Assembly: GCF_006345805.1 (NCBI RefSeq)
Contig: NC_043017.1
Coordinates: 29,140,001-29,204,000, forward strand
Direction of reading: 5' to 3'
Origin: Octopus sinensis
Lineage: Eukaryota
Length of the DNA: 64,000 nt
Within the stretch, counting starts at the first letter, position 1. Each line of letters opens with the position of its first letter. The notes under the pieces are model-generated. The model searched no databases, was not told the DNA's origin, and was given only the letters and a program-made list of their open reading frames with translations. A program made the position numbers and the translations under genes. Positions 1,010 to 59,122 of the stretch are shown piece by piece.

Positions 1010-4000
1010 TTCTCCCGTATAGAGAAAATATCAGGAATATTATTATATCAGTAAATATCAGAAATATTATTATATCAGTAAATATCAGAAATATAGAGAA
1101 ATATTATTATATCAGAAAATATCAGAAGTATAGAGAAAATATCAGAAATATTATTATATCAGCAATTATCAGAAATATAGAGAAATATTATTATATCAGA
1201 AAATATCAGAAATATAGAGAAATATTATTATATCAGAAAATATCAGAAATATAGAGAAATATTATTATATCAGTAAATATCAGAAATATAGAGAAATATA
1301 TATAATAAAATATCAGAAATATTATTACATCAGTAAATATCAGAAATGTAGAGAAATATTATATCAGAAAATACCAGAAATATTATTATATCAGTAAATA
1401 TCAGAAATATAGAGAAATATTATTATATCTGAAAATATCAGAAATATTATTACATCAGTAAATATCAGAAATGTAGAGAAATATTATATCAGAAAATACC
1501 AGAAATATTATTATATCAGTAAATATCAGAAATATAGAGAAATATTATTATATCTGAAAATATCAGAAATATTATTATATCAGTAAATATCAGAAATATA
1601 GAGAAATATTATTATATCAGAAAATATCAGAAATATAGAGAAATATTATTATATCTAAAAATATCAGAAATGTAGAGAAATATTATTATATCTGAAAATA
1701 TCAGAAATATTATAATATCAGTAAATATCAGAAATATAGAGAAATATTATTATATCAGAAAATATCAGAAATATAGAGAAATATTATTATATCTGAAAAT
1801 ATCAGAAATATTATAATTTTAGTAAATATCAGAAATATAGAGAAATATTATTATATCAGAAAATATCAGAAATATAGAGAAATATTATTATATCTGAAAA
1901 TATCAGAAATATTATAATATCAGTAAATATCAGAAATATAGAGAAATATTATTATATCAGAAAATATCAGAAATATAGAGAAATATTATTATATCAGAAA
2001 ATATCAGAAATATAGAGAAATATTATTATATCTAAAAATATCAGAAATGTAGAGAAATATTATTATATCTGAAAATATCAGAAATATTATAATATCAGTA
2101 AATATCAGAAATATAGAGAAATATTATTATATCAGAAAATATCAGAAATATAGAGAAATATTATTATATCTGAAAATATCAGAAATATTATAATTTTAGT
2201 AAATATCAGAAATATAGAGAAATAATATCAGATATTATAATATCAGTAAATATATATATTATAATATTACTGATATTTTCAGATATAATAATATTTCTCT
2301 ATATTTCTGATAATTTCTGATATAATAATATTTCTCTATATTTCTGATATTTACTGATATTATAATATTTCTGATATTTTCAGATATAATAATATTTCTC
2401 TATATTTCTGATATTTACTGATATTATAATATTTCTGATATTTTCTGATATAATAATATTTCTCTATATTTCTGATAATTTCTGATATAATAATATTTCT
2501 CTATATTCTGATATTTACTGATATTATAATATTTCTGATATTTTCAGATATAATATATTTCTCTATATTTCTGATATTTTCTGATATAATAATATTTCTC
2601 TATATTTCTGATATTTACTGATATTATAATTTTAGTAAATATCAGAAATATAGAGAAATAATATCAGATATAATATCAGTAAATATCAGAATATAGAGAA
2701 ATATTATTATATCAGAAAATATCAGAAATATAGAGAAATATTATTATATCAGAAAATATCAGAAATATTATAATATCAGTAAATATCAGAAATATAGAGA
2801 AATATTATTATATCTGAAAATATCAGAATATTATAATATCAGTAAATATCAGAAATATAGAGAAATATTATATATCAGAAAATATCAGAAATATAGAGAA
2901 ATATTATTATATCTGAAAATATCAGAAATATTATAATATCAGTAAATATCAGAAATATAGAGAAATATTATTATATCAGAAAATATCAGAAATATAGAGA
3001 AATATTATTATATCAGAAAATATCAGAAATATTATAATATCAGTAAATATCAGAAATATAGAGAAATATTATTATATCTGAAAATATCAGAAATATTATA
3101 ATATCAGTAAATATCAGAAATATAGAGAAATATTATTATATCAGAAAATATCAGAAATATAGAGAAATATTATTATATCTGAAAATATCAGAAATATTAT
3201 AATATCAGTAAATATCAGAAATATAGAGAAATATTATTATATCAGAAAATATCAGAAATATAGAGAAATATTATTATATCTGAAAATATCAGAAATATTA
3301 TAATATTAGTAAATATCAGAAATATAGAGAAATATTATTATATCAGAAAATATCAGAAATATAGAGAAATATTATTATATCTGAAAATATCAGAAATATT
3401 ATAATATCAGTAAATATCAGAAATATAGAGAAATATTATTATATCAGAAAATATCAGAAATATAGAGAAATATTATATCTGAAAATATCAGAAATATTAT
3501 AATATCAGTAAATATCAGAAATATAGAGAAATATTATTATATCAGAAAATATCAGAAATATAGAGAAATATCATTATATCTGAAAATATCAGAAATATTA
3601 TAATATCAGTAAATATCAGAAATATAGAGAAATATTATTATATCAGAAAATATCAGAAATATTATAATATCAGTAAATATCAGAAATATAGAGAAATATT
3701 ATTATATCAGAAATATCAGAAATATAGAGAAATATTATTATATCAGAATTATCAGAAATATATAGAAATATTATTATATCTGAAAATATCAGAAATATTA
3801 TAATATCAGTAAATATCAGAAATATAGAGAAATATTATTATATCAGAAAATATCAGGAATATAGAGAAATATTATTATATCAGTAAATATCAGAAATATA
3901 GAGAAATATTATTATATCAGTAAATATCAGAAATATAGAGAAATATTATATCATAAAATATCAGAAATATTATTACATCAGTAAATATCAGAAATGTAGA

Positions 4001-4169
4001 GAAATATTATATCAGAAAATATCAGAAATATTATTATATCAGTAAATATCAGAAATATAGAGAAAATATTGAGAAATATTATTATATCAGAAAATATCAG
4101 ATATATAGAGAAAATATCAGAAATATTATTATATCTGAAAATATCAGAAGTATAGAGAAAATATCAGAA
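1010..4169 (+). repeat. AT-rich satellite array (37-bp and 27-bp units, 101-bp higher-order period) with an internal inverted block
   Basis: Units AAAATATCAGAAATATAGAGAAATATTATTATATCAG (37 bp) and AAAATATCAGAAATATTATAATATCAG (27 bp); the TCTG variant recurs at 3077, 3178 and 3279; about 2266-2626 is reverse-complement. Confidence 0.97.
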
Positions 4170-4340
4170 ATATTCTGTTGTGTCAGGGGAGAGTCATTTT
4201 CTTTTTGTGCCTAATAAAAATAAGAAATAAGTGGAAATCTTACCGGTGAGTATGTTAAATTATAAGGCACAAAAAGAAAATGACTCTCCCTAGACACAAC
4301 AGAATATGCTTCGACAAACACTCCTATGAACATTTGACAT
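4170..4340. mobile_element. Palindromic repeat family E (MITE-like or Penelope inverted tail)
   Basis: About 44-bp inverted arms ATATTCTGTTGTGTC..GAGAGTCATTTTCTTTTTGTGCCT / AGGCACAAAAAGAAAATGACTCTCCCTAGACACAACAGAATAT; homologous copy at 46676-46965. Confidence 0.7.
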
Positions 4341-12992: not shown

Positions 12993-13205
12993 GTGAGCTG
13001 GCAGAATCGTTAGCACACCAGGCTAAAAGCTTAGAGGCATTTAGTATGTCTTAACGTTCTGAGTTCAAATTCCGCCGCAGTCGACTTTGCTTTTCACCCT
13101 TTCGGTGTCGATAAAATAAGTACAAGTTAAGTACTGAGGACGATGTAATCGATCATCCCCCTCCCCCAAATATTCAGGTGCTGTGCTTATAGTGGAGAGG
13201 ATTAA
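12993..13205 (+). mobile_element. SINE family C (tail type 1)
   Basis: GAGCTGGCAGAATCGTTAGCAC..GAGTTCAAATTCCGCC..GTCGATAAAATAAGTAC..GTGCTTATAGTGGAGAGGATTA. Confidence 0.88.
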
Positions 13206-23256: not shown

Positions 23257-23715
23257 GAGGCGGCTAGCTGGCAGAATCGTTAGCGCACTGGACGAAATGA
23301 TTAGCAGTATTTCACCCGTCGTTACGTTCTGAGTTCAAATTTTGTTGAGGTCGGATTTGCCTCTCACCCTTTCGGGGTCGATAAAATAAGTACCAGCTGG
23401 GTACTGAGGTAGATTTAATCGACTCCACACCATCCCAGAATTTGCTGGCCTCGTGTAAAAATTTTAAATCATTATTATTAATATTAATACTATCTATTAT
23501 TATTTTCATTATTATTATTCTCACAGGCGGCGAGCTGGCAGAAACGTTAGCACGCCGGGTGAAATACGGAGCCGTATTACGTTTGCCGTTACGTTCTGAG
23601 TTCAAATTCCGCCGAGGTCGACTTTGCCTTTCATCCTTTCGGGATCGATAAATTAAGTACCAGTTACACACTGGTACAATGTAATCGACTACAATGTAAT
23701 CGACTTCATCCATTA
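23257..23715 (+). mobile_element. Two adjacent SINE C copies (about 23257-23480 and 23525-23715), each after an (ATT)n-like run
   Basis: Both carry GGCGG..GCTGGCAGAA.CGTTAGC heads and GAGTTCAAAT B boxes. Confidence 0.9.
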
Positions 23716-23917
23716 CCTCAATGGACGTCATTGATTGGTTGAAATTGCAGAAATTGAAGAAAAAAAAACAACAAATATCTTACAAACTATAGAATTTTCT
23801 CAATAAAGCCAAGAGAAAAAGATGTTTTATAAACACATTCAACCAGTATACGAAGTTTAAAACTTTTTAGTTACCTAGAAATTATGTTAAAAACTGCCGT
23901 TCAAACCGAAAAGATCC
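23716..23917 (-). mobile_element. Half copy of the GGATCTTTT MITE
   Basis: Ends AAAAACTGCCGTTCAAACCGAAAAGATCC; matches the 39.6-41.5 kb copies. Confidence 0.9.
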
Positions 23918-24435: not shown

Positions 24436-26800
24436 GTTTTATTATTACCCACAAGGGGCGAACATAGATGGGACAATACAATCTGATGATGGGGTCAGAC
24501 ACACGAATGGGTTTTTACAATAAATCGAATTTAAAAATTTTCATGAATTACAATAAATGGACAGAAATCGAATGATGGGACAGACCGGAAGACATTACGG
24601 GTGGAGTGGGTGCGGGTTTAGCTCGGACCCCACGAGCCCCGCCTCCCCACTGATACTTTTGGTTGCGCTTGGTATTACATTTATGTTGTATCTTTCACTC
24701 GCAACTTTCGTGCTACATCCTTCCATCGTTCTTCATACACTCTCCTAGTCAGGCATATTCTCTCCAGCCCTATCTTCCTTTTCAGGTGAAAGACGAAATA
24801 CTTCATCAAACCAGGGCCGGAGATGAACTTGCCTGACTGTACACCTTTCATTCTCGTCTTCCATATCACCTCTTTCGCAATTACTACTACAACGAGAAAA
24901 CGAAACTTACCTTCATTCACGAGGAAATCCGGTGGGTCAATTTTTGTAATCGACTCAGTCGACAGCTGTACTCTTCGTGTACCTGACAACAGCTGTTCGG
25001 CATAAACCCACACCTCAGACACGTCCGGACAATGAACAATAGCGTGCGGGACGGTTTCCCTATCCCGCCCGCATCTTGGACATATCGGACTGTCTTGGCC
25101 ACCGTGCCTTGCGAGTTTATCCCGAACAGGTAGAGCTCCTCTGTAGCATTGCCATGCCAGAGACTTCTGGAAGTTGTCCAGTGTCCTCGGCTCGAACGTA
25201 CGTCGGAACAGACTGGCCAGCTGATTATCGTCGAGACCTAGGGTTTCCCCCAAGGTATCTTCACATTCCGCCTCTACCAACCCTCTATAGAAGAATGTGG
25301 TGGAACCCCCACCGCAGGCGTTGCCCGAGCGACGGAATAGCAGGAGAGCCTTGCGACACTCCGTGTACCAAGTACCAAGTTTCGATCTACGATTCAGCCA
25401 GGTTTCCCATCCACCGAAACTAGTGAACTTGGGAAACATCAGTTTTGCTAGCGAAGACCACACCCGTTCACCATCCAGGTAGAGCCACAGATGTCTTAAC
25501 CTCAGCGCATGTCTGCGCATCATCAGCCAAGGCATCCCTAGCCCACCCTTTAACGGTTGTTGACAGCAAGTAGAGCGTTTCACAAGTGGTTTCCCGCCCT
25601 TCCACAAGAAGTAGAAGAGCTGTCTTTCCAACTTGATCAACCACGAATCAGGGCAAGGAACGACGGAAAGGCGGTAGGTGATAACCGATGCGATAAACAC
25701 ATTGCCCACCTCCGCCCTCCCTTTCAGGGATAGCCACCGCCAAGACCAGGTCTTGGCTACTGCAGCCACCTTGCTCGTTACCCCACCTCGCCCCAATTCT
25801 TCTCTATTTGGAGGTCTGGACCGAACCAGACCCCTAGCAGTTTAATCGGACCCTCCGTCCAACGTCCCACGATGCTGTCAGGAGGCATCGACTTGCCTCT
25901 CCAGGTGCCGAGTTGCAAGCCGACTGACTTTTCACGATTAACTTTTGCTCCTGTCACCGTCTCGTAAACCTCTATGGCCTTGCCTACTTTACATAGGTGG
26001 TCCATTTCGGTTACGATGATGGTGATGTCATCCGCGTACGCTGACACTGATTTTCCATTACCTGGCTGTCTCGGGATGCCGCTCAGTTTTCGCAGTAATG
26101 GCTCAAGAGCCATCACGTACAAAAGCGGGGAGAGAGGACACCCTTGACGAACCGAGCGTTTGATTTTGAACGGCTTCGACAAGAAGCCGTTCACCCGAAC
26201 TACCGAGTCGATGTTATCATAAATTTGGATAATCCACCTGAGGAAGCCAAGGCTCAGCCCGAACTGTGCCAGGGCAGATACCAGGTAACGATGGTCGACC
26301 CTATCAAAAGCTTTAGATTGGTCTAAATGGACCAGTGCCCTACCCTTGCCAGAATCACTATTAAACCCCTCTATAGTGTACCGCATTAGATGGAGATTAT
26401 CCTGAATGGATCTGCCCGGAACGGCACATGTCTGTGCCTCTCCGATCAGACCATCCGCGACACGCGCCAATCTTTTCGATAACACTTTGGCCAAAATCTT
26501 CAACTCTGTGTTTAGCAGAGTGATGGGCCTGAAATTATCAATGCACTCCCCCTTGCTCGGGTCCTTTCTGACGAGAGTCACTACTCCCCGGCGCACAGAT
26601 CTGGGTATAAGCCCGTTCTGCTGCCAGTTCGCATAGACCTCCGCCAGTAGGTGCCCGAACAAGTCTGGCATACTCTTATATAACTCATAGGGTAGACCAT
26701 CCAGACCCGGCGCCTTGCCCGCGCCGCAGTCCGCCATTGCCTCAACCACCTCCTCAGGCGTGATTGGCCCTTCACAGCCCTCCGCATCTCGCCCCGATAA
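24436..26800 (-). mobile_element. 5'-truncated L1/Tx1-clade LINE (RT, C-terminal zinc knuckle, 3' UTR)
   Basis: GKAPGLDG, FRPITLLN, LDQSKAFDRVDH, SVRQGCPLSP, YADD and CPRCG..ETVPHAIVHC motifs; 3' end GCCCCTTGTGGGTAATAATAAAA. Confidence 0.95.
24681..26800 (-). pseudogene. Tx1 ORF2 remnant with one frameshift near 25790
   Basis: ORFs 25778-26839 and 24681-25796 join at NWGEV/TSKV; endonuclease domain absent. Confidence 0.9.
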
Positions 26801-28067
26801 GTAAAAAACAGTAAAAAAAAAAAAAGACGCCGAAATCATACCGCCTACGCTTCAAACAGTCACGTGACTACAAATGATTTTTTTTTTCGTCTTCGCTTGC
26901 AAAACAAGAGAGCGGTGTTCGTATTCGAGCGGTACGAACGAGAAATTATCCACTGAATAAAATTCTTCGTTCGTAACAATATCTTAACAGTGTTGCCTGA
27001 ATTTAAGCATATAAAATTTATTAAATACTGCTATATTCAGTACTTTCTTCTCATTTATATCCATATATGTTCACGTTCATGGGAGCAGGGCTCTTATGAG
27101 TGTTTCTGCGCGTATGCATATATACGCGCGGGTGCATGGACTATTATTAGAGTTCATTTATATAAACTATATTTGATACTTAAGCTCAAAATATATAAAC
27201 GTGAGTCATGAAAATTACTATTTAACCATCAGTGTTACTACAGACTGATATATTACAAGACTGACCTCAAAAAACTTGAAGTCAAAATATCGAGTTTTAA
27301 TTTATTCTATATTTTAATACTTAAATCGCAAAATTTATTGGAATTTTCAAAAGCGAAACTTATAAAAATTTCATGTTTGGTGCCAGATAAGGTCCAAGAT
27401 AATATATCAGAGCAAGCACAAATAAGTTTATAAATAATAACTATAATTAATACAAAAAGAAAAAAAACTAATAAAGAAAAATATATTGGCAATATACACT
27501 TCATGATTGCTTTTGGGACGATGCGCTTCCGTTGGCAAGATTAATTTGAACTATTTCATTTCACTTACGCTAAAGATAATTTAAGTTTGTTTGATTACAA
27601 TCAATGACGTAAATATCCATAAATAACAACTACAAAAGATGGTAGCGATAGCATCACATCATCACAAACAGAAAACTCCACCATCATCACCATTCAACGA
27701 CATTAACAGCCGTCACTAACATCAATCGGCATAAAAACATCAGAATCAGTAGAAGAAAGTATCATGATAACAACAACAACAACAGCCATATTCTTACTAT
27801 CAATTTTTCTCCCCCTGAATATTGGAACAAGGCCAAAAACTTAAAGGGTAGGGTAAGTAGATAAAATCAATTGCAGTACATACTTTACATCAAGTAGATG
27901 CTTTATATCAAGAAGTCCGGAACGATGAGTCAAAACTGATCTTGATGAGATTTGAACTCAGAACGTAGAGGGAGGGAGAGGTCATTTGATTAAAAACGAC
28001 TCAAATGCAAGTCTGTGAATTTAATATATATTCCCGGAAGCATAGTATAAGCGTCAAAGTTTATCTG

Positions 28068-28297
28068 TTTCTTTATTACCCACGAGGGGCTCAACATAGA
28101 GGGGACAAATAAGGACAGATAAACAGATTAAGTCGATTACATCGACCCCAGTGCGTAAATGGTACTTAATTTATCGATCCCGAAAGATGAAAGGCAAGGT
28201 CGACCTCGGCGGAATTTGAACTCAGAACGTATCGGCAGACGAAATACGGCTACGTATTTCGCCCGGCGTGCTAACGGTTCTGCCAGCTCACCGCCTT
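28068..28297 (-). mobile_element. SINE C with Tx1-like tail, full length
   Basis: TTTCTTTATTACCCACGAGGGGCTCAACATAGAGGGGACAAA..CTGCCAGCTCACCGCC. Confidence 0.92.
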
Positions 28298-33835: not shown

Positions 33836-35341
33836 ATTTGGGGTATATATATTTTACATGCCCTTGAAAAAAAATGAACGAAAAGTCTGACCTGGGAAAG
33901 ATTTGATCTCGGCAGTTAAAGGGTAGTTACTAAATACCATTTTGTAAATTGTCCAACAATCTAATAAATTTGTTGCCCCATCGCCTTCGTACTAATAATA
34001 ATAATAATAAACACGAAGCCAATATAGAGATAACCATCAACTGAAATAAATTGGAATAACCGAAGAAAAAAATCGTTAAAGTTATTAACACTGAATTGAT
34101 TATCAATTTTATCACAGTTTAACCAGATTCATCTATTTTGTATTGCCTATTTATATATTTACTTTATAATGTTTATGAATACATAACGTATACTGGAACC
34201 ATTGTTTGTCTGTTGTTTTGCATTTTGTTGTTTTGAAATCAAAGGTCATGTTTGTTAGTTTTTTTTTATAATTATATATAAATGTTTTTATTTTGCTATT
34301 TTTATTTTTCAGTGTTTGGTTTTATCTTATGGAAACTGAATTGCAGTATTTGAATTTTATTTCAAACATAAAAAAAAAAACAACTTTTGACTCATATAAT
34401 GAATATAAATGAAGTCATTTAATAGATAGTCAAAACAACAACATTTGGTTTGATTATATATATTTTAGATGTATGGACAGCATTTTTAAATAGTTAAATG
34501 CCATTTGAAATGGGAAAATAATCAAATCAACAAAGTTATACTTAAGTAAATCAAGGGTGAAAAGAAACAAAAATATTTTAATCAGAATTAGAAATTTACA
34601 CAATGATGTGAAATGAAGTAGGAAGACTCAGTTGATTTATTGAATTGAAGCGATAACCCTCGCTTAATGATTAAATTGTTCGTACAACACCAACAAATAC
34701 AACAAACTCATAGCTTTATTACTATTGACAGACAGTAATGTCAGTGGTGACAGAATCGGAAAATAAAATAAATAACCAAAAAAAGCCACAGGAATACTGA
34801 ATACTATGTAGTGTAGAAATGAGGTAGGTGAATTAAAGTAAACTAAAGATTGATTTTCTTCTAATAGGCTAAACGTTCTTTCGTATAATATAAACGACAT
34901 GTGTTCAATAACTAGTGGCCAATTTAGAATTATTACTTCATATTGCTTTATAGTATTTAGCGTTTCCCAGTAGAGTTGTAATGTGTTGAAGAAGCAACTC
35001 TCTGTTTTTCTAGCATTCAAGTGATTAAAATGCGTTTATCGACTTGGACGTAGTATAAAATTCTCGAAGGATGTAGCTTCAAGTGTATATAAGAAATGCG
35101 AAATGAGTTAGGCAAACTATAGCGTTATAGACACAGATCTATTGTTATTCATCTCACAACATACATATTTGCATTTTACGTGCGTGAGTAAACAGTTTAT
35201 TAGTATTTGTTTATGGTGCAGCCAAAGACACGTTTTTAATTAAGCGTGTGCTACACTGGGTGTGTCATATTTGCCCATTATTAATTTTATCTTGAACTAA
35301 AAATTTTCCGAATTTGGTTCATAATATTTAGGAGTTGTTTG

Positions 35342-38300
35342 GGATCTTTTCCTTTTGAACGGTAGTTTTCAACACAATTTATAGTTAACTTTTAGGATCT
35401 TTTCCTTTTGAACGGCATATGTCAACACAATTTCTAGTTAACTAAACACTTTTAAACTTCGTATACTGGTAGAATGTGTCAAAATAAAATATTTTTTTGG
35501 ATCTTTTCCTTTTGAACGGCACTTTTCAACACAATTTCTGATTAACTAAACACATTTAAACTTCGTATACTGGTAGAATATGTCAAAATAAAACATTTTT
35601 TGGGATCTTTTCCTTTTGGACGGCACTTTTCCACACAATTTCTAGTCAACAAAAAACTTTAAAACTTCGTATTCTAGTAGAATGTGTCAAAATAAAACAT
35701 TTTTTGGATCTTTTCCTTTTGAACGACACTTTTCAACACAATTTCTAGTTAACTAAACACTTTTAAACTTCGTATACATAGTAGAATGTGTCAAAATAAA
35801 ACATTTTTTCTCTTGGCTTTCTTGAGAAAATTGTAATTTGTTTGTTTAACGTAGTTTAAATTTTCGAATTTGTGCGACAACTAATTCATTCGGTTGTACA
35901 AATTGTTTACACGGGAACTCTTGCCCTTGTGGAAGTTTTCCCGTTTTTATAAATTTGTTTCTGGGCTTTTTTAGCCATTTTCTGTTTTGGCGACTTGAAG
36001 CCAAGAAGTCGTCGTTGGAAAGAACGGTGGTCTCCTTGACAACGCTTACGACGTTGATTTCCTTACACTGCCTTCCCCACAGCTTCACGAGGGAGGGGGG
36101 AAAAGGGGAGGAGCTACACAGGTGCAGGTGTGAGTATGGTCGCCAACGCCGCCACCATCATAACCACCACTACCACCACCACCACCACCACTGCCACTAC
36201 CACCTACGCCGTCGCTATTTCATATACCACCACCACCATACTATTACCTCTGCTCTCTCCTTTTCGCTACTAAATCTATTACCATATTTCACAAGTACCA
36301 TCGCCATACAATATTGCCTTCAAAAGTTTGTGTTTGGATAACATTTTTTATGTAAAAGTTGTGCAACAACTAAAACATTCGGTTGTGCAAATTCTTTGCA
36401 CGGGAAACCTTCCCTGTGTGGCGGTTTTTCCCGATTTTGTAGAATTTGCTTTCGAGCTTTTTAGCCATTTTCTGTTTTGGGCATGGTGTCTTCAAGCCAT
36501 GACGTCGTCGTTGAAAAGAACGTTGGTCTCCTTGACAACGCTTTACGACGTTGATTTCCTTACACTGCCTTCCCCACAGCTTCACGAAGGAGGGAGGAAG
36601 GGGAGGGAAGCAACACAGGTGCAGGTGCAAGCATCGACGCCAACTCCGCCGCCACCGACATACGAAAATATTGGAAGAATCCAGACGACAGCTTCACAGT
36701 CAAATACTACTACGCACACACACACACACACATACACACGCACACACGCACACACACACACACACACGCACACACACACGCACACGCGCGCACACACGCA
36801 CACATACGCACACACGCACACACACACATACAAGCACACACGCACACACACGCACACTCATAAAAAGTTATAGAGCACCATTTAATGACAAAAATTCAAT
36901 GAATAGAAGTTATGGAATATCACAGCTCGAGACTTCTAAGCATTTCTTTGAAGGTGCATGGCTCAGTGGTTAGACTGTTGAGCCTACCATCCTGGGACCT
37001 TTTCCTTTTGAACGGCACATGTCAACACAAGTTATAGTTAACTAAACACTTTTAAACTTCGTATACTGGTAGAATGTGTTTATAAAACATCATTTTTTCT
37101 TGGCTTTATTGAGAAAATTCTATAGGTTGTAACATATTTCCACTTTAAAATCGAGCATTTCGGCAATTTTAACCAATCAAATACGTCCATTTGGGGTGAA
37201 AACATACCGTGCTGTATGAATATATCCCTCGTGTAAGAAACAGATTGGGTTTGTTTACATTTGCGAAGAAATAAAGAGACCCTTCCCCCACTCCTAACCC
37301 TAATCATAACCATAACTCTAAACCTATCCCTAAAACAGATTGAAATGCAATAGATCGATACTAGGGTTATAATTATGGGTGACAATTTCATACGACACCG
37401 CTGCGGTGTCAAATGAAAATGTCACACATAATTATAACCCTAGTATCGATCTATTGCATTTCAATCTATTTTAGTATTAGGTTTAGTTAGAGTTAGGGTT
37501 TGGGGGACGGTGATGTTAGGGTTAGGGGTGGCGGAAGGGTATCTTTTTTTCTTCACAAATGTAAACAAACCCAATCTGTTTCTTTAACGAGGGGCATATT
37601 CATACAGAACGGAATGTTTTCACTCCAAATTGACGTATTTGATTCGTTGAAATTGCCGAAATGCTCGATTTTAAAGTGGAAATAACTTACAACCTATAGA
37701 ATTTTCTCAAGAAAGCCAAGAAAAAATGATGTTTTATTTTGACTCATTCTACCAGTATACGAAGTTTAAAAGTGTTTAGTTAACTATAACTTGTGCTGAA
37801 AAGTGCCGTTCAAAAGGAAAAGGTCCCAGGATGTTAGGCTCAACGCTCTAACCACTGAGCCATGCACCTTCAAGGAAATGGTTAGAAGTCTCTAGCTGCG
37901 ATGTTCCATAACTTCTATTCATTGAATTTTTTTCATTAAATGATGCTCTATGACTTTTTATGAGTGTGCGTGTGTGTGCGTGTGTGTGTGTGTGCATGTG
38001 TGTGTGTGTGTGTGCGAGTGTGTGCGTGCGTGTGTGCGTGTGTGTGTGAGTATGTGTGTGTGTGTGCGTGTGTGTGTGCATGTGTGTGTGCGTGTGTGCG
38101 TGTCTGCGTGTGTCCGTGTGTGTGTGTGTGTGCGTGTGTGCGTATGTGTGCGTGTGTGTGTGTGTGTCCGTAGTAGTCGTTGACTTGTGAAGCGGTCGTC
38201 TGGGTTCTTCCAATTTTTTCGTGTGTTTGGCGTCGATGCTAACACCTGCACCTGTGTTGCTTCCCTCCCCTTCCTCTCTCCCTCGTGAAGCTTGTGGTGG

Positions 38301-39290
38301 AGGGAGTGTAAGGAAATCAACGTCCTATAGCGTTGTTAAGGAGACCAGCCTTCTTTTCAACGACGACTTCAAGGCTTCAAGTCGCCATCGTCAAAACAGA
38401 AATGGCTAAAAAAGCCAAAACCAGAGACACAAACTCGGGAAACACGCCACACAGGGCAGGTTTCCCGTGCAAGCAATTTGCACAACCGAATGAATTAGTT
38501 GCTGCACAACTTTTACATAAAAATTATTATCCGAACACAAACTTTTGAAGGCAATATTGTATGGCGATGGTACTTGTGAAATATGGTAATAGATTTAGTA
38601 GCCAAAAGGAGAGAGCAGAGGTAATAGTATGGTAGTGGTGGTAGTGTTAGTGGCGGCGGTGGCAGTGGAAATAGCGACGGCGTAGGTGGTAGTGGCAGCG
38701 GCGGTGGTCGTGGTCGTGGTGGTGGTGTTGCTGGCGTAGTTGGCGTCCATGTTTACACGTGCACCTGTGTAGCTTCTCCCCCTTCTTCCCTCCATCGTGA
38801 AGCTGTGGTGAAGGGTGTGTAAGGAAATCAACGTCGTAAACGTTGTCAAGGAGACCACCGTTCTTTCCAACGACGACTTCATGTCTTCAAGACGCCATGC
38901 CCAAGACAGAAATGGCTAAAAAAAGCCGAAAAACAGATCCACAAAAACGGGGAAAACCGCCAAACAGGGCAAGGTTCCCGTGCAAACAATTTGCATGACC
39001 GAATGAATTAGTTGTTGCACAAATTCGAAAAATTAAACTACGTTAAACAAACAAATTACAATTTTCTCAAGAAAGCCAAGAGAAAAAAATGTTATATTTT
39101 GACACATTCTACCAGTATACGAAGTTTAAATGTGTTTAGTTAATCAGAAATTGTGTTAAAAAGTGCCGATCAAAAGGAAAAGATAAAAAAAAATGTTTTA
39201 TTTTGACACATTCTACCAGTATACGAAGTTTAAAAGTGTTTAGTTAATCAGAAATTGTGTTGAAAAGTGCCGTTCAAAAGGAAAATATCC
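35342..39290. mobile_element. Foldback-like 3,949-bp palindromic DNA transposon derivative
   Basis: Termini GGATCTTTTCCTTTTGAACGG / CCGTTCAAAAGGAAAATATCC; exact TSD GTTGTTTG (35334-35341 / 39291-39298); symmetry axis GACACCGC-T-GCGGTGTC at 37402. Confidence 0.9.
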
Positions 39291-39327
39291 GTTGTTTGTT
39301 ATATTTTTTGATTACTAACTACTGATA

Positions 39328-39369
39328 ACCACTGACGAGGTTACAGGATTGTGGCGAAAGAACTCTGGT
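39328..39369 (+). ncRNA. Minimal type-I hammerhead-like fold
   Basis: ACCA-CTGACGA-G-GTTACA(GGAT)TGTGGC-GAAA-GAAC-TC-TGGT: canonical core, one extra G, stem II with two G-U pairs, CUC triplet. Confidence 0.55.
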
Positions 39370-39636
39370 CGAAATAAGATTAAGTTTAATGTAAAAAAAA
39401 TCAAATAACACTGAAGCAAAATAACACCAAATATATAGTGCGTGTGTTTTTATTGACTAAACTGGTAAAATGACCATTCCTAAATACAACAGTATATGTT
39501 TCAACACACGATTTCACATTAAGAATCTTGCAAAACAAATATATAATTTTTTTGATAATATTTTACTTATATTTACAATTCAAAATCGGAATCCATTGCT
39601 TTTACAATAGACTCTCATATTTTCTGAACTAAACTG

Positions 39637-40066
39637 GGATCTTTCCGGTTTGAACGGCAGTTTTTTCTAGCGGTGTCATATGAAATTGTCACTCATAATT
39701 ATGACCCTAGTATCGATCTATTGCATTTCAATCAATTTTAAGGTTAGGGTTAGTTAGTTTTGAGGTTAGGGGTGGGGGGAGGGTACCTTTTTTTCTTCAC
39801 AAATTTAAATAAACCCAATCTGTTTCTTAAACGAGCGACATATTCATACCTCATAGTATGTTGTTTACCTCAATGGACGTCAGTGATTGGTTGAAACTGC
39901 AGAAATTGAAGAAAAAACAAACAAATATCTTACAAACTATAGAATTTTCTCAATAAAGCCAAGAGAAAAAATGTTTTATAAACACATTCTACCAGTATAC
40001 GAAGTTTAGCATTTTTTAGTGAACTAGAATTTACGTTAAAAACTGCCGTTCAAACCGAAAAGATCC
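39637..40066 (-). mobile_element. GGATCTTTT MITE, full length
   Basis: ~29-bp TIRs; 8-bp TSD CTAAACTG (39629-39636 / 40067-40074). Confidence 0.95.
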
Positions 40067-40343
40067 CTAAACTGAATGTTTAAATAATGGGTGAAATCAT
40101 GAACCTATTCGGTATATTGTGGTGATTCCAATCAGCAGTGGTCTACTTCTTCAGTAGTTGGTTTGTTTCCAAACATAGATTAAATAAATGGCTTGCTAGA
40201 ATTGCAAAACAAAGATATATATCGCAACAGATACATAGGTTTTACAGAGCGGAGGAATATCAGCAATTCCTATCAAGCAGCCTCCCAATCAACCGAGATA
40301 TACTGTTTGTCTATACAAATGGATAATTGCAATGTATACCTAA

Positions 40344-40769
40344 GGATCTTTTCGGTTTGAACGGCAGTTTTTAACATAATTTCTAGGTAACTAAAAAATT
40401 TTAAACTTCGTATACTGGTAGAATGTGTTTATAAAACATCTTTTTGTCTTGGCTTTATTGAGAAAATTCTATAGTTTGTAAGATATTTGTTGTTGTTTTT
40501 CTTCAATTTCTGCAATTTCAACCAATCAGTGACGTCTATTGAGTTAAAATGCATTCTGTGCCGTATGAATATGTCGCTCGTTTAAGAAACAGATTGGGTT
40601 TATTTACATTTGTGAAGAAAAAAAGATACCCTTCCACCACCTCTAACCCTTACTAACCCTAACCCTAAAACAGATTGAAATGCAATAGATCGATTCTAGG
40701 GTCATAATTATGGGTGGAATTTCATATGACACCGTCAGAAAAAAACTGCCGTTCAAACCGAAAAGATCC
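40344..40769 (+). mobile_element. GGATCTTTT MITE, full length
   Basis: TIR GGATCTTTTCGGTTTGAACGGCAGTTTTT at both ends; internal (CCCTAA)-like run; TSD not evident. Confidence 0.93.
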
Positions 40770-41054
40770 GGTATATTTTATGAAGATCTTGCATATGTAT
40801 TTGCTTTTACGTGTTAAACTAATTGTTCTGTATGTACTGTCTCCACAAGCAGGGGTCGCACGTTGACACAGCGGAACAAAGGCAGAATAAATCTTTTATC
40901 AAATGACTATCAAACATTTTACCAACCGTTACAAAAACAGAAACACCACTAACGTACCCATGGTTTTCACATAGTTTCAAGAACAGGGAAATATCTCTCC
41001 AGTAGTGTTCCATGGGTGAAGAATACTTCAAATTGCCAATAGAAAAATTTTCTC

Positions 41055-41489
41055 GGACCTTTTCGGTTTGAACGGCAGTTTTTTCTAGCGGTGTCATATG
41101 AAATTGTCACCCATAATTATGACCCTAGTATCGATCTATTGCATTTCAATCTGTTTTAGGGTTAGTGTTAGTTAGGGTTAGAGTTAGGGGTGGGGGAAGG
41201 GTATCTGTTTTTCTTCAGAAATGTAAATAAACCTAATCTGTTTCTTAAGCGAGGGACATATTCATACGGCACAGAATGTTGTTTACCTCAATGGACGTAG
41301 TTGATTGGTTGAAATTGCAGAAATTGAAAAAAAAAAAAACAACAAATATCTTACAGACTATAGCATTTTCTCAATAAAGCCAAGAGAAAAAAGGTGTTTT
41401 ATAAGCACATTCTACCAGTATACGACGTTTAACATTTTTTAGTTACCTAGAAATTATGTTAAAAACTGCCGTTCAAACCGAAAAGATCC
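41055..41489 (-). mobile_element. GGATCTTTT MITE, full length
   Basis: Same TIRs and body in reverse orientation; TSD not evident. Confidence 0.93.
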
Positions 41490-41779: not shown

Positions 41780-41937
41780 TTTTGCTCGTCTTGTTCCTTG
41801 GTTTGTGTCTATGTGTTTCGTCTCTCTATGTGTTCGACGTCTTTTTGGTGTCCTGTACACATATATGCGTGTATATGTACATGTAGAGGTAGGTACGTAC
41901 ATATATGTTTATATATATGCATATATTCTATTTTATT

Positions 41938-58468: not shown

Positions 58469-58698
58469 AAATGTATGCGCCCGTACATTTCTTACATGAA
58501 CTAGACAACGCAGAACACAGAGAGTTTTAAACACATTAAAATAGACACAGAATAATAAATTTGGGGAACGGCTATAGTCGAATACATTGCCACCGGTACT
58601 CACCTCGTACTTATTTTATCAACCCCTAAAGCATGGAAGGCAAAGCTGTATTTGAACTTAAAACAGTGAAGGCAAGTACTAGGTATAGTAAAAATGTG

Positions 58699-59122
58699 GG
58701 ATCTTTTCGGTTTGAACGGCACTTTTTAACATAATTTCTGGGTAACGAAAAAATTTTAAACTTCGTATACTGGTAGAATGTGTTTATAAAACATCTTTTT
58801 CTCTTGGCTTTATTGAGGAAATTCTGTAGTTTGTAAGATAATTTCTGTAATTTCTTGCATTTCGACAATTTCAACCAATCAATGACCGTCTATTGAGGTG
58901 AAAACCTTCTGTGCCGTATGAATATGTCCCTCGTTTAAGAAACAGATTGGGTTTATTTACATTTGTGAAGAAAAAAGATGCCCTTCCTCTCACCCTAACC
59001 CTAACTAATCCTAAACCTAAAACAGATTGAAATGAAATAGATCGATACTAGGGTCATAATTATGGGTGACAATTTCATATGACACCGCTAGAAAAAAACT
59101 GCCGTTCAAACCGAAAACATCC
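58699..59122 (+). mobile_element. GGATCTTTT MITE, full length
   Basis: TIRs; 8-bp TSD AAAATGTG (58691-58698 / 59123-59130). Confidence 0.95.

Follow-up and report, generated by a model that had tools for sequence, protein, structure and literature searches.

Is the 3,949-bp imperfect palindrome at positions 35342-39290 of a 64,000-nucleotide stretch of Octopus sinensis DNA (hereafter the window; NCBI RefSeq assembly GCF_006345805.1, contig NC_043017.1, positions 29,140,001 to 29,204,000 of the forward strand) a genuine transposable element, from what was it built, and how did it come to its site? An earlier note on this DNA had described it as a foldback-like palindrome that was assembled from a miniature inverted-repeat transposable element (MITE) and transposed as one unit. 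Our analysis confirms that the palindrome is real, and that it is an old, foldback-like ("two-TIR", for terminal inverted repeat) element that derives from a family of cut-and-paste DNA transposons. The MITE accounts for less than half of each arm, and the route by which the palindrome reached its present site is weighed below.

Structure and authenticity of the palindrome

A repeat search returned long inverted pairs that tile the whole interval around a single centre at T37402, which separates arms of 2,060 nt (35342-37401) and 1,888 nt (37403-39290); the axis sequence at 37394-37410 reads GACACCGC-T-GCGGTGTC. The arms were compared by global alignment of the left arm with the reverse complement of the right arm. 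They are colinear and 90.9% identical over 1,773 positions, with 75 transitions, 86 transversions and 31 gaps, and identity is uniform at 89-93% in each module. The Kimura two-parameter (K2P) distance between them is 0.097, or about 4.9% per arm. The features of the palindrome and its borders are listed here in their order along the window, with the target-site duplication abbreviated as TSD, the short interspersed nuclear element as SINE, and model positions counted along the parent MITE.

35334-35341, plus strand: left TSD GTTGTTTG, 8 bp
35342-35366, plus strand: left TIR GGATCTTTTCCTTTTGAACGGTAGT, a subfamily-2 variant that equals the right terminus at 22 of 25 positions
35342-35880, plus strand: left outer MITE 5' fragment, made of a 53-bp partial unit, four tandem 104-bp units and a continuation past the unit to model position ~180
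35881-36345, plus strand: left M1, a GC-rich (43-48%) non-MITE module whose core (~35867-36157) is common with M2 and is followed by a CCA-rich tail
36346-36714, plus strand: left M2, a second, older copy of the M core (36356-36654)
36715-36857, plus strand: (CA)n microsatellite of the left arm, 143 bp
36858-36994, plus strand: left spacer, 137 bp, with a tRNA A-box-like motif at 36956-36984
36995-37402, plus strand: left inner MITE, model positions 1-401 of 434, with the 3' TIR absent and the cut after GACACCGC(T)
37403-37828, minus strand: right inner MITE, model positions 1-400, the mirror of 36995-37402 and 91.9% identical to it
37829-37963, minus strand: right spacer, with a tRNA A-box-like motif at 37837-37865
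37964-38167, minus strand: (GT)n, the right-arm copy of (CA)n, 204 bp
38168-38540, minus strand: right M2, 86% identical to left M2
38541-39006, minus strand: right M1, 88% identical to left M1
39007-39290, minus strand: right outer MITE 5' fragment, made of two 104-bp units and a continuation to model position ~184
39266-39290, minus strand: right terminal TIR
39291-39298, plus strand: right TSD GTTGTTTG, 8 bp

Both ends of the palindrome carry the TIR of the MITE family, and GTTGTTTG occurs on the plus strand only twice in the 64 kb, each time abutting one terminus. The chance of a match at 8 of 8 bases at fixed positions is ~3e-5, and the length of the duplication is the same as in two solo copies of the family (C and D, below). 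The palindrome thus lies precisely between two 8-bp target copies, as is characteristic of integration by the transposase of this family. A paralogous empty site is not present in the 64-kb window, and both palindrome flanks are unique. With these results, the earlier description of an imperfect inverted repeat around 37402 that is bounded by MITE-type termini and an exact 8-bp TSD is borne out.

Palindromic chimeras are a known artefact among long reads, and a chimeric read or a mis-join would make a false inverted duplication of this general kind. Against this, the arms differ by 9%, and they do so at 19.3% of CpG-context sites compared to 8.4% of all others, a 2.3-fold excess (odds ratio 2.6, Fisher p = 1e-4) which points to germline CpG decay and not to sequencing or assembly error. 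The arms also carry differing microsatellite lengths and indels of 12-22 bp as well as 4.5 terminal units on the left and 2 on the right, the outer ends agree to the nucleotide with the family TIRs and the exact TSD, and the window has no N. An artefact is therefore strongly disfavoured and in our estimate extremely improbable, as the earlier note had already argued from the visible divergence of the arms.

Each of the 104-bp units begins with a TIR copy. Tandem Repeats Finder places the left unit starts at 35342, 35395, 35499, 35603 and 35706, and the two right units at 39083-39290, exactly as they had been read from the sequence before. The order of the parts within each arm (terminal units, two M copies, (CA)n, spacer, and most of a MITE body) likewise agrees with the previous map. 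Two details of that map need correction. M had been described as two copies of a ~450-bp module, while M1 measures ~465-490 bp and M2 ~370 bp, and only a core of ~290-300 bp is common to them, at 83% identity. The outer MITE fragment, for its part, does not stop with the 104-bp unit but reaches model position ~180. In the whole window, the A-box-like motif GCATGGCTCAGTGGTTAGAGCGTTGAGCC is found only directly upstream of the inner MITE in each arm; it may represent the head of a SINE that served this MITE as insertion target. ARAGORN and Rfam give no call for a tRNA or SINE head at this stretch, and we refer to it as an A-box-like motif.

M, the (CA)n run and the spacer have no detectable relation to the MITE, so that ~42% of the palindrome is MITE-derived and ~58%, corresponding to ~1.1 kb of repeat-rich DNA per arm, is not. 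The idea that the palindrome was assembled from a MITE consequently goes too far, since unrelated DNA, which includes the independent repeat M, makes up more than half of each arm. Annotation of only 36995-37828, or of only the terminal units, as "MITE" would miss the composite.

In its architecture the palindrome conforms to the definition of a foldback element on which the earlier note had relied. Its arms make up nearly the whole element with essentially no middle domain, they are internally repetitive, the tandem part being confined to the outer portion of each arm, and a TSD flanks them. It is not a MITE in the strict sense, given its size of 3,949 bp and its 58% of non-MITE DNA. As in killer-type loci, both arms begin with the 5' end of the MITE family. 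The palindrome encodes nothing and, as a non-autonomous element, would need a transposase in trans; given its age, it is probably not mobile today. The term "foldback lineage", which had also been applied to it, would need further copies, and none is present within the 64-kb window.

Three further observations concern the MITE-derived parts. A telomere-like degenerate tract, (CCCTAA/CCTAA)n with 5-8 units, is conserved inside the MITE body at ~37293-37335 and ~37471-37530, where a 12-bp indel separates the two palindrome arms, and every solo copy has it too (for example inside 58698-59122). The two inner copies differ at MITE positions ~88-100: the left one (~37053-37068) reads GTGTT--TATAAAAC as in the solo copies, and the right one (~37755-37772) reads GAGTCAAAATAAAAC as in the outer 104-bp units. 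Gene conversion over a short patch, between outer and inner MITE sequence within one arm, may account for this difference. An Rfam match to SSRC8_2 at the axis is far below its gathering score and reflects the hairpin shape only.

The parent MITE family and the captured repeat M

The parent family is a ~434-bp element, with solo copies of ~425-434 bp and perfect 25-bp TIRs, GGATCTTTTCGGTTTGAACGGCAGT...ACTGCCGTTCAAACCGAAAAGATCC. Outside the palindrome, the window has five solo copies, four of them complete and one partial, in agreement with the ~430-bp MITE proposed previously:

58698-59122, plus strand: solo MITE copy C, subfamily 1, with TSD AAAATGTG of 8 bp; the family reference
39637-40067, minus strand: solo MITE copy D, with TSD CTAAACTG of 8 bp, 346 bp to the right of the palindrome
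40344-40769, plus strand: solo MITE copy E, no intact TSD
41055-41489, minus strand: solo MITE copy F, no intact TSD
23713-23917, minus strand: partial MITE that ends at model position ~205 and abuts a SINE-like repeat (...GACCTCGGCGGAATTTGAACTCAGAAC...) also found on the metagenomic contig L004 (below); the truncation looks like a later insertion or deletion

By size and structure the solo copies are MITEs, and their pairwise divergence amounts to 7-10%. All MITE-derived parts of the palindrome carry diagnostic bases that are absent from the five solo copies (TTTTCCTTTTG instead of TTTTCGGTTTG, as well as CAACACAA and TAAACAC), and by these bases they can be assigned to a second subfamily.

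The family is clustered: the palindrome and the solo copies D, E and F lie inside 6.2 kb (35342-41489), and the other two copies are found at 23.7 and 58.7 kb. This grouping would fit local hopping. Copies E and F are arranged tail to tail as an inverted pair (arms 40493-40668 and 41162-41337, 86% identity); they were considered as a composite with a shared TSD and rejected as such, since their outer flanks differ.

To which superfamily the family belongs was judged from its termini and target sites. The TSD is exactly 8 bp in all three readable cases (palindrome, copy C and copy D), in which 9-bp readings fail. Merlin elements are characterized by a conserved terminal 5'-GG-3', TIRs of 24-462 bp and TSDs of 8-9 bp (PMC8101967), and Merlin families are annotated in Octopus vulgaris (PMC13282606). 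The solo copies have 25-bp TIRs that start with GG (GGATCTTTTCGGTTTGAACGGCAGT), and like non-autonomous Merlin elements the family combines a terminal 5'-GG and a TIR length within this range with an 8-bp TSD. hAT elements have 8-bp TSDs and YARNG termini (PMC3014272). The family agrees with hAT in the length of its TSD and not in its termini, which read GGATC in all copies, with G instead of Y at position 1 and G instead of A at position 2. Mutator-type foldbacks typically have a 9-bp TSD, and the three 8-bp duplications are at the edge of the 8-10-bp range of the foldback element Tetris (PMC4079207). Because its TIRs start with GG and its TSDs are 8 bp long, we regard the family as Merlin-like; on these structural features it would fit Merlin better than hAT, with P and Mutator as further possible superfamilies. 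An autonomous Merlin partner would encode a DDE_Tnp_IS1595 transposase and carry the same TIRs; our assignment is made from two structural criteria, and the 64-kb window contains no transposase-like open reading frame (ORF) of at least 110 aa. For annotation, this means that the present family, with its GG termini and 8-bp TSDs, is better compared with Merlin than with hAT.

The non-MITE part of the arms looks like ordinary repeat-rich host DNA, and its largest component, M, is found elsewhere. An exhaustive protein search with the minus frame of M1 gave a single meaningful match, P0121, an 81-aa chance ORF on contig L004 which represents another non-coding copy of the repeat. L004 is a 1,066-bp contig from an Italian ENA metagenome (ERZ22666216), in which positions 679-893 match each of the four M cores at 84-87% identity. 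Here the M core stands in other surroundings, with no adjoining MITE unit, M tail or (CA)n. As L004 and the window have several further short repeats in common, we take the contig to come from the same or a related genome. On L004, the M core separates a pair of short repeat units that adjoin directly at two further spots of the contig, ~1-91 and ~101-235, and M thus behaves there like an insertion. M is probably a small mobile element in its own right. Positions 354-457 of L004 also match a SINE-like repeat at window positions 28194-28297, 12995-13090, 23589-23627 and elsewhere.

The GC content of M is 47-50%, compared to 35% for the window. A captured coding fragment was considered and rejected: none of the six M frames tried has a Pfam match, and the open frames are explained by this GC content. 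M was likewise rejected as a diverged MITE body, its alignment scores being inside the shuffle range.

Formation of the palindrome and its arrival at the site

The order of events can be read from the similarity of the modules. M1 left and right are 88% identical and M2 left and right 86%, whereas M1 and M2 are only ~74% identical to each other. The M copies thus pair by type across the arms, indicating that the duplication of M and the whole arm architecture predate the palindrome, and the colinearity and uniform identity of the arms (89-93%) indicate that one inverted duplication event gave rise to them. Over the unit, outer and inner MITE copies today have 88-91% identity. Together with the shared diagnostic bases, and less the divergence that accrued later, this points to close relatives at the time when the palindrome formed. 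The distance between the arms (K2P 0.097) is similar to the 7-10% divergence among solo copies, which places the origin of the palindrome in the active period of the family and makes it old.

The two inner MITEs end at an identical nucleotide, 33 bp short of the canonical 3' end. At this point, three of the four complete solo copies have GACACCG-CTAG-AAAAAA, and the axis of the palindrome, GACACCG-CTG-CGGTGTC, would need one more base to be a perfect palindrome centred on CTAG. Two same-strand copies may have annealed at the self-complementary CTAG, as a microhomology, with one base lost later. The evidence for fusion at CTAG is suggestive, not proven.

These features show the following course of events. 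An ancestral linear segment consisted of a truncated MITE 5' end with amplified 104-bp units, M1, M2, (CA)n, the spacer, and a second MITE of the same subfamily. One event then put an inverted copy of the left part in place of all that lay to the right of a point 33 bp from the 3' end of this second MITE, yielding a palindrome with the same functional TIR at both ends. The palindrome stands between two 8-bp target copies, as after integration via the family's transposase, and its arms later diverged by ~9.7% (K2P) through ordinary germline mutation.

Where the inverted duplication took place is a separate question. We tentatively favour that the palindrome existed beforehand at a donor site, from which it was moved to its present position as one unit by cut-and-paste, like the 2-TIR copies of the Drosophila element Galileo. 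Three origins, at a donor site, during insertion, or in place, all leave the same TSD, and a single copy cannot separate them; only under formation at a donor site would one expect more copies that have this axis but differ in their TSDs. Of the proposal that the palindrome was transposed as one unit, the TIR ends with their exact TSD therefore stand, while the same duplication is also left by the two other origins and just one copy is at hand.

Several points weigh against formation at a donor site. Only one copy is known: the 64-kb window contains neither a second axis, nor a second M1-M2-(CA)n-spacer block, nor a subfamily-2 MITE elsewhere. An origin in place, or in the course of insertion, would produce an identical duplication. 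The external collections searched contain no host DNA, which leaves mobility as a unit putative. The CTAG microhomology needs the later loss of 1 nt, and it is not unusual to find a 4-bp palindrome close to a random breakpoint. Finally, the putative superfamily is deduced from TIR and TSD features, as no transposase is linked to the family.

Searches outside the window bear little on the number of copies. The axis junction has zero exact matches in the metagenome, prokaryote-genome and viral contig collections, and the most conserved 25-mer of the family has zero matches in them as well. Because this generic MITE sequence is also absent from those collections, the negative results for the axis carry no information. 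Probes made from chance ORFs (the plus frame of M1, and a frame across the MITE and axis) matched nothing, not even the window's own ORFs, and are uninformative on copy number; exact look-ups of the reverse transcriptase ORF and of the axis-spanning ORF found no record.

A rather unlikely alternative, yet one that would account for the single known copy, is that the palindrome never transposed and arose in place by aberrant repair of a double-strand gap. Here, an ordinary long non-autonomous element with 5' TIR units, M1, M2, (CA)n, spacer, nested MITE and further sequence up to a 3' TIR would have stood at GTTGTTTG and been converted to a palindrome after excision, during repair from the sister copy. 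The identical 25-bp TIRs would have let the right broken end invade the left TIR, so that both ends copied the left half and the nascent strands were joined at CTAG, and the TSD would be inherited from the earlier insertion. A single local event would in this way yield the TSD, the termini of identical type, the symmetric one-nucleotide truncation and the CTAG breakpoint, and the age of the palindrome equals the family's period of activity. Abortive gap repair is, moreover, an established source of rearranged non-autonomous elements. On the other side, direct evidence of a non-palindromic precursor at this site is missing, the process needs both a mis-invasion and an extension of ~1.9 kb from both ends before joining, and its exact product is without demonstrated precedent in the family or phylum.

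Birth of the palindrome during insertion, by an alternative (sister-chromatid-type) transposition of one 5' end, seems unlikely to us. The same 5' end of a fractured MITE would have paired on two sister chromatids, and both would have inserted into GTTGTTTG. Their trailing segments, consisting of the fractured MITE and ~1.5 kb of host DNA including a neighbouring MITE, would have broken or stopped re-replicating and fused to a palindromic composite insertion. One event suffices in this case, and it explains both why the outer MITE is a 5' fragment only and why host DNA (the dispersed repeat M, the microsatellite and the A-box-like fragment) lies between two MITE pieces. Composite insertions in maize with inverted repeats of the Ac 5' end, 1.8-3.9 kb long, have the same size and architecture (doi 10.1101/2020.01.07.897926). 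However, in the known maize cases the ends involved are one 5' and one 3' end, and large duplications or deletions are found in the flanks, whereas both flanks of the octopus palindrome are unique and its junctions are those of a simple insertion. In the literature searched, such a mechanism is described neither for the family nor for animals.

Hairpin potential, neighbouring repeats and significance

The palindrome has the ability to form a long hairpin that had been foreseen for it. Its predicted RNA fold has a minimum free energy of -2760 kcal/mol, compared to about -1150 kcal/mol for two flanking controls of the same length, and contains 1,655 cross-arm base pairs; its longest uninterrupted helix measures 76 bp. 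Around the palindrome, the window has no recognisable gene or exon.

Whatever the origin of the palindrome, a transcript of it, if made, could be a ~1.7-1.9-kb hairpin RNA that serves as a substrate for ADAR hyper-editing or as a killer-like trans-silencer of an autonomous partner. We consider such a function improbable. The predicted fold and its long perfect helices speak for it, and in maize inverted duplications of transposon 5' ends trigger silencing (doi 10.1101/2020.01.07.897926). Editing of repeat-derived double-stranded RNA (dsRNA) is widespread in Metazoa (PMC5625713, PMC9989829). Against this, the lack of a recognised exon nearby gives no indication of read-through transcription. 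Molluscs show no sign of a specialised pathway based on endogenous small interfering RNAs (endo-siRNAs; PMC12479628), which speaks against the killer-locus mechanism in this phylum and makes ADAR a more plausible fate than Dicer for dsRNA. A maize-style killer mechanism is thus less likely here, and ADAR or Piwi-interacting RNAs (piRNAs) would be the more plausible fates of a transcript. The ADAR idea in itself is plausible but not specific, and that the palindrome is transcribed, within a long intron or from a neighbouring promoter, and its ~1.7-kb duplex handled by ADAR in the cephalopod appears very improbable.

The window contains other repeats that are set apart from the palindrome. Positions 1036-4170 are a ~3-kb AT-rich minisatellite with periods of 10, 37, 64 and 101 and a unit of ~AAATATCAGA..., unrelated to the MITE family. 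The unit is nearly self-complementary and a short segment (2338-2578) has the opposite orientation, which together account for many inverted matches of 150-250 nt at 93-99% identity. On the minus strand, 24681-26839 is an element of the long interspersed nuclear element (LINE) type with two long ORFs, one of 353 aa with an RVT_1 domain and one of 371 aa downstream, that overlap at 25778-25796 in the manner of one frameshift; the best relatives of its reverse transcriptase are ~50% identical, one of them named Acanthosepion pharaonis, a cuttlefish. Taken alone, this match hints weakly at a cephalopod or mollusc lineage and is the window's sole clue of this sort. Three loci retrieved for such relatives differ from the window in GC content and lack the MITE. 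Rfam matches to mir-297, mir-466 and mir-1277-like families at 41854-41934 score 25-32 bits, compared to gathering scores of 81-100, and were rejected; the matched stretch is a hairpin of TA/TG microsatellite, and chance is almost certainly the explanation.

Foldback-like elements are already well known as a kind, and the palindrome adds another example. Its closest parallels are the 2-TIR copies of Galileo, a member of the P superfamily in Drosophila, in which two long inverted arms likewise make up the element. Galileo has long internally repetitive TIRs with arm-specific numbers of tandem repeats and recruited internal sequence, and long TIRs of this kind evolve in unrelated superfamilies (PMC3573991). 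As in the palindrome, tandem-repeat number differs between the arms, internal non-terminal sequence was recruited into them, and the copies are non-autonomous with short flanking TSDs (PMC3573991). In contrast to the palindrome, Galileo has 7-bp TSDs, P-type ends, a known THAP/P transposase and many copies per genome. The octopus element for its part has an 8-bp TSD, a TIR that starts with GG, one known copy, a 1-nt centre and ~58% of apparently foreign DNA.

The Drosophila FB element has a TSD of 9 bp, unlike the 8 bp in three of three readable cases here, and its arms consist almost wholly of short tandem repeats, whereas the tandem part is limited here to the outer 0.3-0.5 kb per arm. What FB and the sea-urchin TU element have in common with the palindrome are long, internally repetitive fold-back arms, and most foldbacks are placed in Mutator (PMC4079207). 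In the Drosophila virilis group, the foldback Tetris and the MITE DAIBAM have common termini and TSDs of 8-10 bp, with no transposase found (PMC4079207). They thus resemble the octopus case as a foldback and a MITE with common ends, and in arm tandem repeats that derive from part of the terminal domain. Unlike the palindrome, Tetris is known from several structurally complete copies and includes a defined middle domain, and its authors tentatively placed it in Mutator; the palindrome, unlike Tetris, has a second nearly complete MITE at its axis and unrelated repeats in its arms.

The Mu killer and Ac "killer" loci of maize are 5'-terminal inverted duplications that include adjacent sequence, with 1.8-3.9 kb per repeat, and go back to aberrant transposition and repair (doi 10.1101/2020.01.07.897926). 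The palindrome is similarly an inverted duplication of a transposon 5' region plus adjacent sequence. The maize loci are transcribed, their small interfering RNAs silence the family, and they are accompanied by large flanking rearrangements, while the octopus fold is computed from sequence; in addition, the endo-siRNA pathway seems to be absent in molluscs (PMC12479628).

No foldback element in cephalopods is reported in the literature searched, in which looking for the repeat sequences in print gave no match either. With the palindrome, a foldback-type derivative would be described for the first time both in a Merlin-like family and in a cephalopod. As a single old copy it is of modest importance. 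Palindromes of this kind promote inversions and breakage, as in Galileo and Tetris/DAIBAM, and can nucleate long dsRNA, as in the maize killer loci. If the improbable case of a functional transcript were true, foldbacks derived from the family would form an important group among the endogenous long dsRNAs that are edited, or would correspond in function to the plant "killer" loci while acting via editing or piRNAs instead of small interfering RNAs. The precursor architecture is still legible, with two MITE pieces of the same subfamily around captured repeat-rich DNA and a possible fusion at CTAG, and the palindrome thereby offers a clean, datable example of how a small cut-and-paste element may become a foldback-type element in one step.

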